64,000 nt of DNA, from assembly GCA_002104945.1 (NCBI GenBank), contig MCFH01000017.1, positions 62,001-126,000 of the forward strand, given 5' to 3'. Below the pieces are notes generated by a model. That model was given only the letters and a program-made list of their open reading frames with translations, was not told the DNA's origin and searched no databases. The position numbers and the translations under genes are program-made. This DNA is from Piromyces finnis finn (Eukaryota; Fungi; Neocallimastigomycota). How positions within the stretch are numbered: the stretch's first letter is position 1; the number at the start of each line of letters is the position of its first letter. This document shows, in pieces, positions 61,772 through 62,009 of the stretch.

Positions 61772-62009
61772 AAGAGAGGGACAGCATTGTAGTTGTGAAA
61801 TATCGTACAACGACATGCATCTAATGTACATGGATTAAGTGAGCGTCGAAGCTGAAGAAACAGTATGACAGACCAGGAGGGTCACAACCACCTAGCAATA
61901 GGAATGAGCCAACGTTTCTCTAAGAACCACCATTGGAGCTAACTCTGATCGATGGGAGAAATGCACTCGGAAGTTAAAAAAAAAAAAAAAAAAAAAAAAG
62001 AGAGGGACA
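61772..62009 (+). mobile_element. Retroposed insertion (SINE-like or 5'-truncated LINE end): 192-nt body, A24 tail, target-site duplication
   Basis: (AA)GAGAGGGACA at 61772-61783 and at 61998-62009. Body 61784-61975 has 85/192 G+C (44%). Poly(A) runs 61976-61999. Confidence 0.85.

Follow-up and report, generated by a model that had tools for sequence, protein, structure and literature searches.

The window analyzed here is a 64-kb stretch of Piromyces finnis DNA, and between positions 61772 and 62009 it carries an insertion whose parts all read on the + strand. At its center is a 192-nt body (61784–61975) with a GC content of 44.3%, compared with 17.0% in 4 kb of flanking DNA. Directly 3′ of the body is a pure tail of 24 A residues without interruption (61976–61999), as read directly from the sequence, and body and tail together are bracketed by two copies of GAGAGGGACA, one at 61774–61783 and the other at 62000–62009. 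The 5′ copy of this target-site duplication (TSD) may extend over 61772–61783, in which GAGAGGGACA is certain and the leading AA (61772–61773) is ambiguous because the second copy of GAGAGGGACA comes after the A tail. Thus, the TSD has a minimum length of 10 nt and may reach 12 nt. Within the 64 kb, the decamer is found at the two edges of the insert and nowhere else, and 100 dinucleotide-preserving shuffles contain it 0 times, so the duplication is not a chance repeat. At the 5′ junction there is one base (A) of microhomology. No ORF of at least 70 aa is found within 2.7 kb on either side of the insert. The original prediction, which was made from the sequence alone, had described a TSD on both sides, an A24 tail, a body of 44% GC, and no long ORF, and each of these observations is confirmed.

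A genome search with the 192-nt body returned 839 first-look candidates, and the best 40 of these, which lie on many contigs and include the window's own copy, were scored. All 40 are 100% identical to the body over its full length. Thirty copies were then studied with their flanks; these are best hits, and our figures for divergence within the family reflect these best hits. All of them except the window's own (29 of 30) extend upstream into the same non-coding sequence, and 23 of the 30 start at position 1–2 of a common 5′ end that lies 343 nt upstream of the start of the window copy. The remaining starts are at positions 12, 19, 24, 187, and 344, the last of these being the window copy. From this shared 5′ end, we conclude that the family unit is 535 nt. 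It begins with GTCGTTCCAGTTTTTATCC... (the forms GTCGTTCCAG... and GTCGTTCC are the same 5′ end), and we use as a reference the copy at L001:1158–1692, whose tail is A46 and whose TSD is ATAAGAAAAATAA. The body in the window is 100% identical to positions 344–535 of this reference. Thus, the 192 nt that had been taken for a complete RNA are the 5′-truncated 3′ third of a longer element.

Among the 30 fetched copies, 24 have an exact flanking TSD of 10–16 nt that is different at every site, each copy has a different flanking sequence, and the poly(A) tails are 8–132 nt long with a median of 26.5 nt. We counted copies in the genome with 29-mer probes, allowing up to 2 mismatches, and found 271 tails, 222 mid-sections (SINE positions 299–327), and 208 heads, while reversed-pattern controls gave 0. 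A profile with this 3′ bias, where tails outnumber mid-sections and mid-sections outnumber heads, is typical of target-primed reverse transcription, and about one in five copies of the family is truncated this short. The unit is short, within the range of SINEs (under about 700 nt), its longest ORF is 58 aa, and its copies are many and dispersed. Its poly(A) tails, variable TSDs, and 5′ truncations are those of target-primed insertion, which is the LINE-type mechanism that the poly(A) tail and TSD in the window had originally suggested.

From these results, we conclude that the family is young and SINE-like, with ∼270 near-identical copies in P. finnis, and that the insert in the window is, with high confidence, a recent 5′-truncated insertion of this ∼535-nt non-coding, poly(A)-tailed, non-autonomous retroposon. 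The window copy is without the head of the element and therefore cannot be the source of further copies, i.e., it was dead on arrival, and the locus is an ordinary dead retroposon copy within intergenic DNA. A SINE family and recent activity were both among the original suggestions, and they are borne out by the many full-length copies with distinct TSDs and by the identity of the scored matches, with the qualification that we call the family SINE-like for reasons given below.

Several variants were seen among the copies. The copy in L003 has a deletion of 55 nt at about SINE positions 207–268, between short direct repeats, and the copy in L006 has a deletion of 6 nt at positions 337–342. There is a recurrent head subfamily with GTTGCCTTAGTATACA in place of GTTTCCTTAGCATACA, and some heads are without the tail 29-mer at the expected distance (e.g., C79:532995–533023 and C14:45143–45171), so that family variants carrying another 3′ part probably exist. 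An AT-rich stretch at L001:1290–1342 (SINE positions 133–185) resembles a short fungal intron, with GTAAGT at its start, CTAAT in its middle, and TAG at its end. No spliced copy without this stretch was seen, as all 30 fetched copies keep it, and the deletion in L003 is located elsewhere. At L024:2–2609 a full-length copy lies between two open frames, the product of the upstream one being a subtilase (Peptidase_S8) that also has a chitin-binding domain, and this arrangement may be a gene disruption or an intron insertion.

The head of the full-length element, which the window copy does not have, contains sequences that resemble an internal Pol III promoter. The B-box consensus GGTTCGANNCC is matched by GGTTCGACCCC at SINE positions 59–69, and GTTAAGGCG resembles the D loop of a class II tRNA, with a hairpin of 5 bp and a 7-nt loop between it and GGTTCGACCCC. 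The original prediction had reported no Pol III A or B boxes; this is true of the 192 nt because truncation removed the head, but the full-length head does have a B-box match. ARAGORN found no tRNA in the full element, and Rfam gave no match to tRNA, 5S, 7SL, or snRNA at E values up to 10, either for the whole element or for the 98-nt head alone. When the head was locally aligned to a tRNA-Ser(GCT) from P. finnis, 131 of 1000 shuffles equaled or exceeded the observed score, and its alignment to a P. finnis tRNA-Met was likewise no better than shuffles. The minimum-free-energy fold of the head is not a cloverleaf. Searching by pattern for class II tRNAs that share this D loop and B box gave 173 matches, and only SINE heads were among the 100 of these that were listed. 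A tRNA-derived SINE of the SINE2 type was accordingly considered and rejected, as there is neither a tRNA model match nor a cloverleaf.

Because descent of the head from a tRNA is unsupported by ARAGORN, Rfam, alignment, or fold, we use the term SINE-like for the family and treat its head, with putative Pol III boxes, as unproven in origin. The reference copy also has a run of five T residues at L001:1168–1172 (SINE positions 11–15), inside the presumed promoter head. Such a T5 run is a Pol III terminator in many fungi, and its position fits awkwardly with transcription by Pol III.

To look for an autonomous partner, we considered LINEs of the same genome. The top RVT_1 hits were not useful in this respect, as all five that were fetched are Ty3/gypsy LTR elements. 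At one Ty3/gypsy locus (L065:1129–1295, − strand), genes for tRNA-Met and tRNA-Ser(GCT) lie 9 nt apart and ∼1.3 kb from the end of the pol gene, an arrangement that may have come from targeted insertion next to Pol III genes. When the genome was searched for the APE-type endonuclease family, two LINE lineages were obtained, with open frames of ∼1478 aa and ∼1512 aa. The ∼1512-aa lineage has >60 intact-looking copies, with open frames of at least 1500 aa that include an Exo_endo_phos endonuclease domain. For RT pieces of both lineages, taken from fetched loci, the closest solved structure is human L1 ORF2p (E values of 1e-24 to 1e-31), and R2 proteins are second (1e-15 to 1e-23).

Two further observations concern where insertions lie in relation to these LINEs. 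At L017:32–3192, a SINE copy with the TSD ATATGGTTTCAA sits within a LINE of the second lineage, between the endonuclease part and the RT part. At L071:1540–2320, and also in L069 and L070, a 5′-truncated LINE tail has entered a second LINE tail directly at its poly(A), forming head-to-tail arrays, which suggests that poly(A) tails are themselves favored targets of the LINE endonuclease.

The SINE and the ∼1512-aa LINE have one stretch of sequence in common. SINE positions 401–450, which are positions 61841–61890 in the window, are 83–87% identical to a 53-nt stretch of this lineage. In L068 the match is at 1600–1652, the ORF ends at 1708, and its TGA stop is at 1709–1711; thus, the shared piece falls in the final ∼37 codons of ORF2. 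A 21-mer of the LINE-type module has at least 953 occurrences in the genome. Beyond ORF2, the LINE continues with an AT-rich 3′ UTR of 172 nt, an AATAAA, and then poly(A), and it ends in ...GATGCCGTT(A)n. The rest of the SINE has no match to the LINE 3′ ends that were compared, and this includes its last 85 nt (61891–61975 in the window), a family-specific 3′ end with a predicted CCUA-GCAA-UAGG hairpin and a long terminal hairpin at 61913–61963. The distance from the module to the poly(A) is 85 nt in the SINE and 231 nt in the LINE. The genome therefore holds an autonomous LINE with an intact ∼1512-aa ORF2, an APE-type endonuclease, an RT, and 53 nt in common with the SINE, and, judging from these sequence features, this LINE is the likely driver of the SINE family.

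The predicted RNA fold was compared with shuffled sequences. The minimum-free-energy fold of the 192 nt has an energy of −44.6 kcal/mol, compared with a shuffle mean of −42.0 kcal/mol (z of −0.58), and 50 of 200 shuffles fold as well; the z for the whole 535-nt unit is +0.26. The predicted stability of the 192-nt fold is therefore no more than chance for its composition. All four of the stems that had originally been named by eye are present in the minimum-free-energy fold, but the description of the RNA as highly structured does not hold beyond what shuffles give. Taken alone, the LINE-like module has a z of −2.3 and the terminal 3′ hairpin a z of −3.0, although both values are biased in that the two segments were chosen after the fold was seen. 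A search of Rfam (Rfam 15) with the 192-nt piece and with the whole element returned nothing relevant at E values up to 10. Thus, neither fold energy nor Rfam supports an unusually structured or catalytic RNA.

Within the module, two hairpins are predicted, GUCG..GCUG-AAGAAA-CAGU.UGAC and GACC-AGGAG-GGUC, and the prediction for one LINE variant (of the L064 type) has the same two hairpins as the SINE. The second hairpin reads GGCC/GGCC in the LINE and GACC/GGUC in the SINE, a difference of one compensatory change of G-C to A-U. The SINE copies are too alike for a covariation test of the kind originally proposed, and the comparison of SINE and LINE modules, which has 7 sequences and this one compensatory pair, is underpowered and not significant, as 74 of 500 shuffles do as well.

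The two-hairpin module is suggestive of a handle by which the element would recruit the LINE enzyme, but it lies away from the very 3′ end in both elements, its structural conservation depends on the one compensatory change, and it may equally be no more than a leftover from the assembly of the SINE. The window's 192-nt copy keeps the module, which fits a module that lies inside the minimal retroposed unit. A more specific proposal is that an L1-like, poly(A)-tailed LINE recognizes this module, whose sequence was taken from the final codons of ORF2, as a specific handle, and that the SINE parasitizes the LINE by means of it; we consider this conceivable but rather doubtful. If true, a LINE type that is usually thought to need poly(A) alone would carry a "stringent" RNA signal within its coding sequence.

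We infer steps of transcription, nicking, and priming as follows. A full-length source copy would be transcribed, probably from an internal promoter in the head that includes the B-box-like GGTTCGACCCC. The A tail would be inherited from the source copy; no AATAAA is found near the end of the SINE, and in the LINE this signal is located 22 nt upstream of the tail. The LINE ORF2 protein would then nick the bottom strand of an AT-rich target at CT|AAGAGAGGG (as written on the top strand), and the resulting 3′ end, which ends in T, would prime on the poly(A) so that reverse transcription proceeds from the 3′ end of the RNA. In the event that produced the window copy, copying or 5′ joining would have stopped after 192 nt.

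Three other explanations of the insert were weighed against a truncated SINE-like copy. If the 192 nt were the 3′ UTR of an autonomous LINE, the insert would be a heavily 5′-truncated LINE, and poly(A), TSD, and 5′ truncation are indeed traits of LINE copies; in addition, 50 nt of the body is homologous to the end of a LINE ORF2. However, copies of a LINE 3′ end should run upstream into RT-coding sequence, and the other 29 fetched copies instead extend into the same non-coding sequence, without an ORF, and stop at a common end within 343 nt, most of them at this common 5′ end beside a TSD. The LINE 3′ ends compared also have a different 3′ UTR, the AT-rich one of 172 nt, and only the 53-nt module is in common. 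We therefore regard a LINE 3′ UTR, which had been one of the original alternatives, as very improbable.

A second alternative derives the insert from a functional structured non-coding RNA, cellular or viral (such as a ribozyme or an snRNA-like RNA), that was retrocopied from a single parent gene. The GC content well over background, the predicted hairpins with a GNRA-type loop among them, and the two local hairpins that fold better than shuffles would all be in keeping with such an origin. This explanation, which had likewise been put forward originally, does not account for the ∼270 dispersed copies, which have distinct flanks in each case fetched and mostly their own TSD, and which indicate a self-propagating family. 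Neither the piece nor the whole element is recognized by Rfam, and the whole-sequence folds of the 192 nt and of the 535 nt are no better than those of shuffles, so that we think a retrocopy of this kind highly unlikely. As for an assembly artefact or contamination, the assembly is a long-read one, the same element is present with clean TSDs on dozens of contigs, and a perfect 10–12-nt duplication exactly at both junctions is the signature expected of a biological insertion; the chance of an artefact is accordingly very slight indeed. What remains is the recent, 5′-truncated insertion of a SINE-like retroposon.

Since the studied copies are near-identical, LINE-driven retroposition has probably been active very recently in this anaerobic gut fungus. 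The SINE family is a source of insertional variation, given that fetched copies have landed in other elements and another between the frames of the subtilase-like gene, and it lends itself readily to use as a strain marker. As for the LINE-derived internal module, it suggests, in a form open to testing, how a poly(A) LINE might select its templates. In the library searched, no paper contains both Neocallimastigomycota and SINEs, and none combines anaerobic fungi with SINEs, LINEs, and transposable elements. Two metagenome scans, one with a degenerate pattern for the module and one with a 24-mer from the head, gave no hits in searches from which records of this genome, or of a very close one, were possibly excluded. 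The family is thus one for which no published description was found, yet it is ordinary mobile DNA with an ordinary mechanism.

SINEs with a LINE-derived segment are represented by eel UnaSINE1, which shares its segment with UnaL2, and by tRNA-head SINEs that are paired with LINEs of the CR1, RTE, or L2 type. Like these SINEs, the Piromyces element has a short, non-coding sequence, a defined 5′ end, and a composite structure of head, body, and LINE-homologous piece, and it has hundreds of TSD-flanked copies in a genome with an abundant intact partner LINE. Unlike in them, the piece in common with the LINE corresponds to the final codons of ORF2 and occupies an internal position, with 85 nt between it and the tail, rather than the very 3′ end. 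The Piromyces element also differs from them in that it ends in poly(A) and has a head that is not demonstrably a tRNA.

Alu and B1 are poly(A)-tailed SINEs that are mobilized by L1. The Piromyces family resembles them in its pure A tail without an AATAAA, its TSDs of variable length at AT-rich targets, and its 5′ truncations, and the RT of its putative driver is, among solved structures, closest to L1 ORF2p. In contrast to Alu and B1, it is without a 7SL or other recognizable RNA-gene head, it is long for a SINE at 535 nt, and it carries a LINE-homologous module that both of them lack.

SINE-like elements of fungi include MgSINE of Magnaporthe, Foxy of Fusarium, and Eg-R1 and EGH24 of Blumeria. 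These are likewise fungal non-coding retroposons of a few hundred nt with a head that resembles Pol III boxes and an A-rich tail, and the Piromyces family differs from them in that it comes from a different phylum.
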